From the NCBI GenBank assembly GCA_965112735.1, contig OZ218963.1:558001-622000 (forward strand): DNA of 64,000 bases, given 5' to 3'. Made by a program: the position numbers and the translations under genes. Positions 497 through 58,100 of this stretch are shown here, piece by piece (positions within the stretch are counted from its first letter, which is position 1; every line of letters begins with the position of its first letter). Source of the DNA: Phaeosaccion multiseriatum. Its lineage: Eukaryota; Protista; Ochrophyta, other classes. The notes under the pieces are model-generated. The model was not told where the DNA came from, did no database searches, and saw only the letters and a program-made list of their open reading frames with translations.

Positions 497-3400
497 GTGA
501 ACCGACTGATGGACATCATCATCAACTCCCTCTACAAAAACAAGGAAATCTTCTTGAGGGAACTCATCTCCAACGCCAGCGACGCCCTCGATAAGATCCG
601 CTTCCTCTCTGTGCAGGACAAAGATCTGCTTGGCGACACACGCGAACTTCGGATTCGAATCAAGGCAGATGCTGCGGCCCGTACCCTCACCATCAGTGAT
701 ACTGGAGTGGGTATGACGAGGGCCGACCTCATTGCCAACTTGGGAACCGTGGCCAAGTCAGGTAAGGGATGGCGGTGGATGGAAGGGGAGAGGGAGGGAG
801 GAAAGGGGGGAACTGAGTGGAGTGGAGTGAGTGGGTCAGGAGGAGGAGGAGGAGGAGGAGGAGGAGGAGGAGGAAGAAGAGGAGGATGGCAGGACCATAC
901 CTTACTGTCCTCACCTACTCACACCCCTCATCACTCCGCTCACGCACCCCTTCAACCCCCCACCTCCCCGCGCCTCCTCCCTCCTCCCTCCTCTTCCTCC
1001 TCCTCCTCCCTCCTCTTCCTCCTCCTCCTCCCTCCTCCTCCTCCTCCTCCTCCTCCTCCCTCCTCCTCCTCCTCCTCCTCCTCCTCCTCCTCCCTCCTCC
1101 TCCTCCTCCTCCTCCTCCTCCTCCTCCTCCTCCTCCCCCCCCCCCCCTTCTCCTCCTCCTCCTCCTCCTCCTCCTCCTCCTCCTCCCCCCCCCCCCTCCT
1201 CCTCCTCCTCCTCCTCCTCCTCCTCCTCCTCCCCCTCCTCCTCCTCCTCCTCCTACCCCACTTCACAGGGACCTCAAACTTTGTCGAGGCCCTTACCGAG
1301 GGCGGCGACCTCTCCCTCATTGGACAGTTCGGGGTAGGCTTTTACTCCATCTACCTCGTGGCGGACAAGGTTCAGGTCAGTTTCCAGTTTGGATTTGTGC
1401 AGTGCAGGTCAGGTTCTTACTGTGTAAGTTTTTAGTTTCAGTGTCACAGGCTGAAAGCTCTCGCTTGCGGTGTTTACGGCTCACCAGTTATGCCTTGTCA
1501 GCTTACCTTTTTTATTCATTTTTGATTCATTTGTCATCCATCCCGTGTCGAATGTGTCGATCGATCTCAAATGTGTATATTATGTCGATGTATGTCGAAA
1601 TCGATAAAAAAAAAAAAAAAAAAACGATTCCGTGTACGCAGGTTATCTCCAAGAACAACGCTGACGACCAGTATGTTTGGGAGTCCACGGCTGACTCCCA
1701 ATTCACTGTCAGCAAGGACCCCCGGGGAAACACCCTCGGCAGGGGCACAGACATTGTGCTGCACTTGAAGGAGGACGCCGGTGAGGGGATGGCAGTGGAT
1801 GGGGTGAGGGGGGTTGGGAAGTAGTGGATGGCCGTGGATGGCAGTGGATGGGCAGTGGATGGCAGTGGATGGCAGTGGATGGGCAGTTGGCAATGGGTGG
1901 ATGGTCAGGACAGTGGGTGGGTGTCAGGACAGAGGGTGGGTGTCAGGACAGAGGGTGAGGGGAGTGGTTGCGTGCTTGGGAGGGTGGATGGGGAGCACTT
2001 GCACTTGTAGAGGAATAATACGGGCATATGGGCATGGACTGGGGCAGCCGGGAGAAGTGGGCTTCGCTAACAAACAACTGAATCTCCTCTCTGCCTCCAT
2101 CTCTAACCCTCCCTCCCTCCCTCCCTCCCCCCCTCCCTCCCTCCCATCCTCTCTCCCTGCTTCCCTCCCTCCCTCCCTCCCTCCCTCCCTGCTTCCCTCC
2201 CTCCTTCCCTCCCTCCCTCCCTCCTTCCCTCCCTCCCTCCCTCCCTCCCTCCCTCCCTCCCTCCCTCCCTTCCTCCCTCCCTCCCTCCCCATCCACTGCC
2301 ATCCATACCCATCCATCTGCAGGAGAGTTCCTTGAGAAAGCCACACTGGAGGGGCTTGTGAACCGTTACAGCGAATTCATTGCCTTCCCCATTTACAACT
2401 GGGAGGAGAGCACAGTGCAAGTGGCCGTGGAGGAGGAGGAGGAGGAAGGGGAGGAAGTGGAAGACCTTGACGCGGAGGGGGGGGGGGCTGGGGCGGAGGG
2501 GGACGAGGGTGGTGACGATGAGGACGAGGAGGAGGAGGAGGAGGAAGAGGAGGAGGAGGAGGAAGTGCAGATGAAGTCCGTAAAGGTAGGGAAGGAAAAG
2601 GGCCTTGTCTCTCCGTGTTGTCTGTGGCGTTGGGCTACACATGAGGCTTCTTCTTCTTCTTCTTCTTCTTCTTCTTCTTCTTCTTCTTCTTCTTCTTCTT
2701 CTTCTTCTTCTTCTTCTTCTTCGTCTTCTTCTTTCTTCCAACTCCTCCTCCTCCCTTTCCCTCTTCTCTTCCCCTTTCTTGGCGAAACATCCCAAAAAAG
2801 GTGTGGGACTGGAGAAAAGTCAACAACAATCAGGCTCTGTGGGCGCGTGACAAGAGCGAGATTGACGATGACAGTTACAAGGCGTTTTACAAGAGTATGA
2901 CCAAAGACTATGCGGACCCGGCCACGTGGATACACTTTAAGGCGGAGGGGGAGGTGGAGTTCAAGGCAAGTTGGTGATACAGCAGGAGGGAGGAGGGGGA
3001 GGAGGGGGAGAGGAGGAGGAGGAGGAGGAGGAGGAGGGGGAGGAAGGGAGGGGAAGGAGGGAGAGGAGCGTTTTGCCACACGAAGAACATTCTCCCACTG
3101 GGACTTTTTTTACGTCAGCCCTGCCCTGCCTGCCCTGTCTAACCCTTCCTTGAAACTGGAACTGAAACTGTGCTGCCACAGTCCATCCTGTTTATCCCTA
3201 GCGTGGCTCCGAGCGACATGGGCGACAAGTACTACGACAAGTTTGCAGGACTGAAGCTCTACGTGCGGAAGGTGGGCAGCGAGGGAGGGAGGGGAGGGAG
3301 GGGAGGGAGGGGAGGGAGGGAGGGATGGGAGTGATAGGGTGAGTGAGTGGAGCGAGGGGGTGAGTGAGTGAGGAGTGAGTGAGGGAGTGAGGGAGGGAGT

Positions 3401-55100: not shown

Positions 55101-58100
55101 CGGTACTGCGCGAGGTGCATCGCGGCACATCCGAGTACACTCAGCAGAGACATGACTTCTCGAATGCCCGCTCCCTCCTCCCATCCTCCATCCTCCTCCT
55201 CCTCCTCCTCCTCCTCCTCCTCCTCCTCCTCCTCCTCCTCCTCCTTCTCCTCCTTGCCTGCTCCGGACACCTCTGCCTTCCGTCTGCTGCCACCGCCATG
55301 CTCTGAAGACTTGTCCACCCCACCAACTGGCCCAGAATGGGTACCCACATCGATGCCCAACTTGCCCTCCTTCCCCCCGCCCCGGAACGTGTCCACCCCC
55401 GTGGCCATCACCACATCCTCGTCGCCGCCGCCGGTCTGCTGCCTCCGCCTCCCTTCTCCTGTTGGGGGGTTTCATGAAGCACACACAGACACGCACATCC
55501 ACGCACGCACACAAAGACACACACACATACACACACACAAACACACACACGCAAGTACGAAAGCTTAGCTTCAGTCCTAAAGTCCCGCTTCGCATCCCCT
55601 CCCCCGTCTGACAGCAATGACAATACCTTACCTTCCACCCCTGGAGTCAATGGTGCTGTTCCTGCACTTCCCTGCTCTTGTCTGGCCACACCTGCCACGC
55701 CCGCACCACTTGCACCCCCCCCTCCCCCTCCTCCTCTTCCTCCTCCTCCTCCTCCTCTTCCTCCTCCTCCTCCTCCTCCTCCTCCTCCTCCTCCTCCTCC
55801 TCCTCCTTCTCCTCCTCCTCCTCCTTCTCCCCCTCCTCCTCCTCCACCACCACCACCACCACCACCACCACCACCACCACCACCTATTTCGGCCGCTCTT
55901 CGCCTCTCCAGGAGGGAATCTCGAGCGAGGGCGGGGGTTCCAAACAACATTTGCTGCTGATGCATCGCCAACTGTTGCTGTTGTTGTATCAACACGTCCT
56001 GCTGTTGCAGCACGGAAATCTGCCGCGCCACGTGTTCTGCTCGTGGTGGAGACAAGGGGGAAAGGAATGGCAGTGGATGGAGGGGGGAGGGGGGGATGAA
56101 CGGCAGTGGATGGAGGGGGGAGGGGGGAGGAACGGCAGTGGATGGAGGGGGGAGGGGGGGAGGAATGGCAGTGGATGGAGGGGGGAGGGGGGGAAGGGAA
56201 GGCAGGTTAGGATGTATCAGACTGTAGAGTGTCGAAGCTGTGGTGGTGGCGGTGTATCACCAACTGGTGGTCTTGGTGGTGATGGTGGTGGTGGTGGATG
56301 TATGCACACACCCCGGAGGCTTATCGGGCGCGAAACAAGCGTGCACACACACCACTACACATAGCCTCTCAATCAATCACTGACTTACTGACTCCCTCCT
56401 TCCCTCACTCCCTCCTCCTCCCTCCTTCACTACACTCCCTCCCTTCCTTCCTTCCGCCCTCACTCACTCACTCACTCACTCGCTCACTCACTCACTCACT
56501 CACTTACTCACTCACTCACTCACTTACTCACTCACTTACTCACTCACTTACTCACTCACTCACTCACTCACTCACTCACTCACTCACTCACTCAATCAAT
56601 CACTCACTCACCTACTCACTCCCTCACTCACTCACTCACTCAATCACTCACTCACTCACTCACTCACCTCGCTCTGCAGGAGTCATTGCAGCGGCCAAAA
56701 TAGGCGTAATATGCGGGGGGACGTACATCTCTCCTCCTCCTCCTCCTCCTCCTCCTCCTCCTGCTGCTGCTGCTGCTCCTCCTCCTGCACCACCACCACC
56801 ACCCAACCCACCCCCGCCGGTCCGAGGCAACCCGACCGGTGTCCCTACTATCGGAGTGCGATGATCATGGTGCTGAGAAGCCGTCATGGTATTGGTCATG
56901 GCCAAACGTGGGTCCACCCCTGCCCTAGGGATGAGGATGGCAGTGGAAGGACTCGGTGGCGCTGCGCTGCTGTGACCACCGTGATTATGACCATGTTGCG
57001 TGCTGCCATCCACTGCCATCCTCATCCCTAACCCGCCCAGCCCTAAACCGCTGAGGCTCGTGAGGTTCAGGTCGTTCAAGTCGTCACCGCTGCTCAGCAC
57101 ACTGCTCTCTCCTCCTCCCCCTCCTCCTCCTCCTCCTCCTCCTCCTCCTCCTCCTCCTCCTCCTCCTCCTCCTCCTCCTCCTCCTCTCCTACCCCCCTGC
57201 GTTGCTCCACCAGCCCCTGCCACAGCCCCGTCTCCGCGCCTTCCCTCCATCCTGAAGCTAAGCGCCGCCGTGGGTGTCGATGTCGATGACCGCGATGAGC
57301 CTTCTCCTCCTCCTCCTCCTCCTCCTCCTCCTCCTCCTCCTCCTCTCCTTGCTCCCCCTCCTAACTGACTCGTGCTGCTCTGTCGACGACGACGAGTCGT
57401 TGTGGACGTGGAAGAGGAGAAGGCCGGGTGCATGACGTGAAGACATGCCGCCCCGACCCCCCCTACGCCAGCAGCCGATAAGAGACCACGACCACCAAGC
57501 CCGGGTGCTCCTCCCCCTCCTCCCCCTCCCCCTCCGAAGTCATGAGAGGAGTGCGGTTTGATGCCCGACAGCATGGACGAAGAGGAGAAGGAGGAGGAAG
57601 AGGGACCTCTACCTTTGGTGTGATTGCTGCTGCTTGCAGGGTGAGATGGAGTGGGAGGGGGTGGGGGCATGGCCCTGCTGTCATCATCATCATCATCCTC
57701 GTCGGCAGCAGCAGCAGCAGCAGCAGCAGCGTCCTTGTTGCTTTGGCTGCTGCTCTGCTGAGGAGGACCCACTGCGGTGACTGCGGAATGGGCGTCCGAA
57801 ATGTTCCGTATATCAAAGTACTTGTTGCTCATCTCCTCATCCCTGGCTCGTGTTGTACCACCAACTGCCGCCCCTGCCCCTCCTCCTGCTGCTGCTCCTG
57901 CTCCTGCTCCTCTTGCCCTTCGGGCAGCACCATCAACTGGAGTGAAGGACGCCGATGAAGCCGAAGCGCCGCTGACACTATTGGCGTCAAAGAGCGAATT
58001 GCCGCCACGATGCTCGTTGCTGCTGCTGTTGGTGCTCATGTTGTTAATCCCACCGCCGTCGCCAAAACTGCCCCCCTCCAGACTCCGTACCCAACCCACG

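Follow-up and report, generated by a model that had tools for sequence, protein, structure and literature searches.

A sharp-edged 16-nt word dispersed through the genome of Phaeosaccion multiseriatum and its association with strand-polarised introns

HIP1, DUS/USS, Chi and REP are short words that are over-represented in bacterial genomes, and hypervariable minisatellites of the Jeffreys type have a short, G-rich "core". The element described here, motif B, invites comparison with both. It is the 14-mer GATGGCAGTGGATG, found repeatedly in a stretch of 64,000 nt (the window) of the genome of the alga Phaeosaccion multiseriatum (contig OZ218963.1, positions 558,001–622,000; coordinates below are those of the window). 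Like the bacterial words, it is short and exact, vastly over-represented and without shared flanks. By contrast, it is eukaryotic, lies in G-rich intron arms and takes its orientation from local strand composition, and no uptake or recombination machinery is implicated for it. With the minisatellite core it shares a G-rich unit of about 10–16 nt, strand asymmetry, tandem expansion and higher-order repeats, but it occurs mostly as solitary, sharp-edged words of 1.6 units and not as arrays. Excerpts of a preprint link minisatellites of 10-bp period to chromatin mechanics in C. elegans.

Two intronic systems lie closer. The nearest genomic analogue is the introners, intron-generating transposons of algae and other aquatic eukaryotes, minus their defining whole-intron similarity. 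As described in excerpts of two papers (PMC9860276, PMC11282704), they resemble motif B in their thousands of intron-associated copies in an alga, and some introns carry motif B inverted at both ends. However, introner families are similar over whole introns and have terminal repeats with target-site duplications (excerpts of PMC9860276 and PMC11282704), whereas motif B loci have only 16–20 nt in common. The nearest functional analogue is the G-run and C-run intronic splicing enhancers of GC-rich short vertebrate introns, the function of which was shown by minigenes (PMC2481429; see also excerpts of PMC3606033). Comparable to motif B in placement, their G-rich elements are intronic and near splice sites and their C-rich ones upstream of weak polypyrimidine tracts; these enhancers have additive effects and a strand-polarised location (PMC2481429). 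The position of a G-run enhancer is matched by the copies at 768, 1788, 30443 and 7111, which start 4–16 nt after a GT. The vertebrate enhancers are degenerate runs of 3–4 nt, whereas motif B is one exact 16-mer with about 6,000 copies and is known from sequence alone.

The account favoured here, to which an even chance is given, is that motif B is a discrete, lineage-restricted word of 16–20 nt, GG(GG)ATGG-CAGT-GGATGG(GG), and resides in the G-rich arms of strand-polarised introns, having been copied among these arms and retained at intron edges. The window, which has 57% G+C and is saturated with microsatellites (356 rows in Tandem Repeats Finder, TRF), holds 22 exact copies, 12 on the + strand and 10 on the − strand, as against a chance level of 0.00 copies per window in 100 dinucleotide shuffles; with up to two mismatches there are 59 copies against 0.69 expected. 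The coordinates listed in the original prediction were all correct to within 1 base, and its variants at 768, 6419, 6610, 12868, 30211, 53895 and 56066–56177 were recovered in the two-mismatch scan. Across the 67.1-Mb genome (22 contigs) the exact word occurs 2,836 + 3,043 times (5,879 in total), and the reversed word 0 times. The enrichment, which the original prediction had allowed might be absent elsewhere, is thus genome-wide. A blind 150-kb sample from 15 other contigs contained 15 exact copies, distributed over 8 of its 15 pieces. In total about 260 kb of the genome were read, including this sample and 16 loci of 3 kb, and the genome-wide position statistics given below rest on 49–72 loci. 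Short-read contigs from a DNA run of the same organism are 100% identical to the unique parts of the window; on the decamer stretch they accumulate about 1000-fold, and they exit from it into unlike sequence (loose-end agreement about 0.45), so that motif B is no assembly artefact. Outside this genome, an 18-mer form gave 28 single matches, at chance level, in 241 million metagenome records, none of which held several copies, and matches in the literature were PCR primers only.

The edges of the word are well defined. A G adjoins the 14-mer at position −1 in 43 of 53 loci and at position +1 in 47 of 53; the word is therefore GGATGG-CAGT-GGATGG, frequently with more G on both sides, and consists of two GGATGG half-sites 10 bp apart. 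Exact runs are most often 16 nt long. Three of the ten decamer rotations spell the 16-mer and are 3–4 times commoner than the remaining ones, and genome-wide the GATGG...GGATG phase has 5,879 copies against 1,152 for the phase found only in arrays. The flanks of solitary copies match a periodic continuation in 4.0 and 3.3 of 10 bases, as compared with 3.75 and 3.8 in random G-rich DNA. Since this is no better than the control, the solitary copies are discrete units and not worn-down arrays, and an origin from decayed arrays was rejected. Head-to-tail units of at least 10 nt, as in a minisatellite, are present at 1823–1887 (6.3 units by TRF) and 19920–20177 (25.8 units, 90% matches), while 43 of 59 exact 16-mers are solitary. 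Slippage between the two GGATGG repeats is the best reading of the 10-bp arrays, which would then be secondary. The original prediction had described motif B as a 14-mer of 1.4 decamer units that can expand into arrays; expansion of a word of 1.4–1.6 units is borne out, but the true unit is the 16-mer with fixed edges.

Variation within the word points back to a single source. Of 99 GGATGG pairs, 73 have 4-nt spacing, and the spacer reads CAGT in 32, CAGG in 13 and TAGT in 10. Copies with a CAGG spacer (723) or a TAGT spacer (471) are likewise dispersed, over all large contigs. Loci with one mismatch number 35 as against 23 exact loci, which corresponds to about 9% divergence from one consensus, and the mismatches are spread over all 16 positions. 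There is one master word behind motif B, with dispersed subfamilies.

The orientation of the word follows that of its surroundings. With the motif masked, the 58-nt downstream flank is G-skewed in 42 of 48 loci (null 0.48, p = 1.5e-8) and the 58-nt upstream flank in 38 of 48 (null 0.48, p = 1.8e-5); the downstream flank is the G-richer of the two (p = 0.03), and only 1 flank in 96 is strongly C-rich, where 15% would be expected. This masked test replaced a first count of arm membership (48 of 49 loci inside a G-arm), which was partly circular in that the word can seed the arm call. As the G strand of motif B lies on the G-skewed strand, the word reads away from the exons on either side. Seen on the sense strand, copies after donors have the G-form and copies before acceptors the C-form; the ten copies anchored by homology, in HSP90, WD40 and TPR genes, are intronic and all read away from the nearest exon. 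A heuristic scored a boundary where 60 nt of open frame without skew led up to either a donor consensus (no more than 16 nt from the word) or an antisense YAG (no more than 30 nt away). Such splice-like boundaries lie near 26 of 49 motif B loci (53%; 7 donor-like and 22 acceptor-like), as compared with 18.8% of 4,392 control G-rich 16-mers in G-skewed DNA, a 2.8-fold excess (p = 8e-8).

The gene that opens the window, a GRP94-like HSP90 gene on the + strand, shows the arrangement at individual introns. Its exons were profile-searched piece by piece against Pfam, and the HSP90 profile positions are colinear across eight open reading frame (ORF) pieces, by which most intron ends are fixed. In 8 of 11 measured introns the first quarter is 42–67% G (at most 13% C) and the last quarter 40–69% C (at most 14% G). 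Typically, a homopurine microsatellite arm leads into a unique centre that differs between introns, followed by a homopyrimidine arm that is C-rich and free of AG. Five of the introns within 762–6642 are 507–546 nt long. Motif B or a close variant is found in 5 of 14 introns, starting 5–8 nt after the GT of introns 1, 3 and 14, and its complement on the sense strand ends 4–19 nt before the AG of introns 3, 10 and 12.

At intron 1 (762–1268) a variant 16-mer with a CGGT spacer (767–782, +) lies 5 nt after the GT, the exon end being backed by a HATPase_c match. Intron 3 (1781–2322) has the word at both ends: a solitary 16-mer and the 6.3-unit array (1787–1887, +) begin 6 nt after the GT, and a 16-mer in the C-form on the sense strand (2289–2304, −) stands 18 nt before the CAG acceptor; the exon that follows matches positions 1–73 of the Pfam HSP90 profile. 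Another such C-form 16-mer (5505–5520, −) is placed 4 nt before the TAG acceptor of intron 10 (5356–5524). Intron 12 (6311–6642) contains two GTAGATG variants, one within its C-rich arm (6419–6432, −) and one 19 nt before the CAG acceptor (6610–6623, −), ahead of an exon matching profile positions 372–417. A two-mismatch variant (7111–7124, +) lies about 8 nt after the donor of intron 14, where the exon was assigned by reading and not by Pfam. Intron 2 (1376–1641), between two polarised introns, is AT-rich with a run of A19 and lacks the G/C polarity.

Copies of one decayed minisatellite or transposon family would share flanks, a possibility named in the original prediction. An all-against-all comparison of 200-nt flanks at 72 loci, filtered for low complexity, found next to no such similarity: 5 upstream and 8 downstream of 2,556 pairs, 13 of 5,112 comparisons in total, all over 17–57 nt. 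At 16 genomic copies the word directly follows GTGAGGG, with an open frame up to the GT in about 10 of the 16; the upstream flanks of these donor-adjacent copies are mutually unrelated, which rules out an origin as paralogous copies. Judged by these comparisons, motif B is not a transposon. A telomeric or telomerase-type origin was also rejected: contig C1 starts with TTAGGG arrays, so that the telomere repeat differs from motif B. Neither the window nor 150 kb of other loci had a family match in Rfam at the gathering score, and ViennaRNA with its quadruplex option predicts no G-quadruplex, leaving a 20-mer unfolded (0.0 kcal/mol).

Motif A, CAGTTGGTGATACAG, is the other widely dispersed complex word, of similar copy density and likewise present at HSP90 intron ends. 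That motif B is dispersed alongside motif A, as originally proposed, holds: among complex 12-mers only these two occur in 14–16 of 22 ten-kb pieces, and the 12-mers ranked below them are all microsatellite-derived. The further proposal that motif B is a second word of the same system finds no spatial coupling behind it. The median distance from motif B to the nearest motif A is 1124 nt against a null of 1283 nt, 11% of copies lie within 300 nt of motif A where 16% are expected, and the per-piece counts are uncorrelated (rho 0.33, p = 0.13). Motif A also differs in lying in CAG tracts and in having flanks that are only mildly G-skewed. In the HSP90 gene, motif A starts at +3 of a GC-AG intron (2966–3181, AAG/GCAAGTTGGTGATACAG); in intron 11 (5579–6124) it stands at +35, with a reversed variant directly against the acceptor (CTGTGTCACCAATAG/). 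The sequence GGCAGTGA, which is the 8-bp unit of an array, has a GGCAGTG core in common with motif B and is the top non-microsatellite 12-mer of the 150-kb sample, yet it is local and not dispersed.

We infer that motif B spread by copying. Short-patch non-allelic conversion or templated repair would propagate it at the DNA level between G-rich arms, and the mutual resemblance of these low-complexity arms would let such patch copying occur. It is proposed that copies persist at intron edges because the word fits what splicing tolerates there: following the 5' splice site, the G-form could serve as a G-run element, and the C-form, being free of AG, could occupy the C-rich tract before the 3' splice site. 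The 6-nt direct repeat would then permit replication slippage and give rise to the minority of 10-bp arrays.

Several points weigh against this account. No copying step, empty site or conversion tract was seen. Among the variant loci, 15 of 35 are hit at the 4 spacer positions of 16, about twice the rate per position of the half-sites, and this bias could equally reflect constraint on the GGATGG half-sites, which is a functional reading. The control behind the boundary excess is dominated by positions deep in long arms, the test itself is heuristic, and a coarser test of position within arms was not significant (25 of 48). Moreover, splice sites outside the HSP90, WD40 and TPR genes were mostly inferred from sequence. 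Transcriptome and metatranscriptome runs sharing about 10% of the words of 601–6600 did so only in CA and other microsatellite words, without splice junctions.

A broader claim is made tentatively, and as it stands is unlikely: motifs A and B may represent an undescribed class of ultra-short (12–20 nt), flank-less dispersed words in a eukaryote. A templated process at the DNA level would write such words into tracts of simple repeats, subfamilies would descend from a master word, and the words would then be co-opted or tolerated at intron edges.

Motif B might instead, as the original prediction had it, be a recognition word; selection would then keep it either as a DNA site with two half-sites on one helix face or as an RNA splicing signal. 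Such a role would suit the fixed edges, the two half-sites held at 10-bp spacing by the 4-nt spacer of 73 of 99 GGATGG pairs, the lower variability of the half-sites than of the spacer, the enrichment at splice-like boundaries beyond that of other G-rich words, and the thousands of exact copies. However, RNA-binding proteins seldom require 16 exact bases, and the G-form and C-form, although different RNAs, are both frequent on the sense strand, at 7 donor-like and 22 acceptor-like loci. Most introns of the G/C design do without motif B, as in HSP90, where 5 of 14 have it, and motif B is not coupled to motif A. Given the strand composition, the orientation is fully predictable, so that a double-stranded recognition site is superfluous for the observed pattern. 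A selected word of this kind is regarded as decidedly unlikely.

Without any copying between loci, motif B would be merely the commonest by-product of an intron design with a G-rich start and a C-rich end, combined with slippage. Its orientation and location do follow this general design, and the arrays with higher-order structure behave like ordinary minisatellites. A 16-mer, however, cannot arise independently thousands of times when shuffled sequence yields 0 copies, and composition of this type would have to explain why A and B are the only complex 12-mers in 14–16 of 22 pieces, why solitary copies are sharp-edged and not decayed arrays, and why motif B is 2.8-fold more often near boundaries than other G-rich 16-mers. 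This explanation is accordingly held to be improbable.

Next, the word could be the remnant inverted terminal repeat of introners or of miniature inverted-repeat transposable elements (MITEs), with interiors that have decayed into microsatellites. It is inverted at both ends of HSP90 intron 3 and of two introns at one sampled locus (L008), five HSP90 introns have the similar lengths given above (507–546 nt), and pairs 294–332 nt apart occur in a tandem gene family at C1:609000–781000. This family comprises at least 17 units, 2–26 kb apart; each contains a + copy of motif B, a − copy 294–332 nt further on and usually a third copy about 2.2 kb beyond. A 108-nt hairpin in the window (56925–57032, −) would also fit: it runs from GT to AG, its length is a multiple of 3, and its 22-bp stem carries motif B in both arms (57007–57020 and 56936–56949; dG −59.4, z −8.8). 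It lies in frame within a 631-aa stop-free frame, as a hairpin mini-intron or else as a palindromic coding insert. It is unique in the genome, matching only itself, and tight inverted pairs occur at only one other genomic place, on which grounds a MITE or hairpin family was rejected. Convergent 17-mer pairs are rare outside the paralogous family on C1, and HSP90 introns 1 and 3 show no target-site duplication. Whole-length similarity among introns, as in introners, was not found: HSP90 interiors are unrelated, and the flank comparisons yielded only the 13 short matches among 5,112, although at about 9% divergence partners should remain recognisable. An origin as element ends is thus very improbable.

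Finally, an RNA zipper, in which the G-form and C-form would pair the two intron ends and bring the splice sites together, can draw on the end-to-end fold of HSP90 intron 3 (G-form paired to C-form), on a 16-mer duplex of −32 kcal/mol and on pairing energies of −36 to −78 kcal/mol between the 70-nt ends of introns with the G/C design, but is so improbable as to be set aside. Across twelve introns, cognate 70-nt ends had no pairing advantage over those taken from different introns (−45.5 versus −45.4 kcal/mol, p = 0.37), so that their complementarity is generic and a specific zipper is rejected. Intron 3 has a folding energy typical of its composition (z −1.3), most copies lack a partner within their own intron, and a comparable stem-loop model of human LCAT intron 4 failed a direct test (PMC2481429).

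The remaining copies in the window are spread over several loci. A WD40 gene spans 30283–31601 on the + strand. A one-mismatch variant, in the C-form on the sense strand (30211–30224, −), lies 58 nt before the acceptor of its exon 30283–30425, and two 16-mers (30442–30504, +) follow at +16 and +63 of intron 30426–30810, the donor of which is CAG/GTGGGTG. The copy at 31016–31031 (+), which reads DGSGW, lies between two WD40 blades, in a G-rich insert of low complexity that is 390 nt long and in frame; because this insert has no C-rich arm and no nearby donor, the copy is probably coding. It is the single probably coding copy in the window, and to that extent the original description of motif B as distributed like motif A, "including in exons", stands; its tie to G-rich intron arms of one orientation, near splice-like boundaries, does not agree with that description. 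Two more copies (31629–31691, +) lie 30–90 nt after the stop codon of the WD40 gene (31599–31601). A variant at 53895–53908 (+), hence in the C-form on the − strand, precedes the acceptor of a TPR exon on that strand by about 45 nt.

Two copies have acceptor-like settings: a 2.6-unit copy (15641–15666, −), for which the + strand shows the C-form followed by CCCAG and an open frame, and a 16-mer (51888–51903, −), for which the + strand shows the C-form, then CTACAG and unique sequence, with a (GGA)n arm on the other side. The solitary 16-mer at 44542–44557 (+) is preceded by a donor-like AAA/GTGGG within a 1163-aa stop-free low-complexity frame. The 25.8-unit array (19920–20177, −) has mostly the TAGT spacer with CAGT units interspersed, and it shows a 100-bp higher-order repeat; a donor-like GTGGGTG stands directly before it on the − strand; about 800 nt upstream, a solitary 16-mer of opposite orientation (19098–19113, +) lies in purine-rich low-complexity DNA. 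Another solitary 16-mer (27212–27227, +) is located within a 2-kb purine-rich stretch of the + strand (26000–28000; GC skew +0.55, AT skew +0.54, 65% G+C), which contains a 576-aa stop-free frame without a Pfam match. One-mismatch variants are present at 12868–12881 (−) and 20680–20693 (−), and four variant copies (56066–56177, +) are found inside a G-rich array of 33-nt period.

A Pfam search of ten long ORFs of the window gave almost no matches, these ORFs being low-complexity read-through. An exon at 33022–33180 (+) matches CDP-alcohol phosphatidyltransferase (PF01066, E 9e-12) and sits in a 662-aa stop-free frame that runs on into proline/glutamate-rich low complexity. At 14442–14927, a 244-nt unit forms two tandem copies of 99% identity between (GATA)n and (CCTCC)n arrays.

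The dispersed repeats of eukaryotes are normally pieces of transposons or arrays, and a sharp-edged, flank-less 16-mer with thousands of copies fits neither. If motif B was copied between introns, it would point to an uncharacterised short-patch copying process; if selection maintains it, it would represent an intron-edge signal of unusual length and exactness, in an alga with complementary G-rich and C-rich microsatellite intron arms. The G arms of HSP90 introns create long false open frames, and gene predictors for this genome should therefore allow for the intron design. Motif B and the polarised introns may together offer a handle on how very repeat-rich introns are recognised and evolve.

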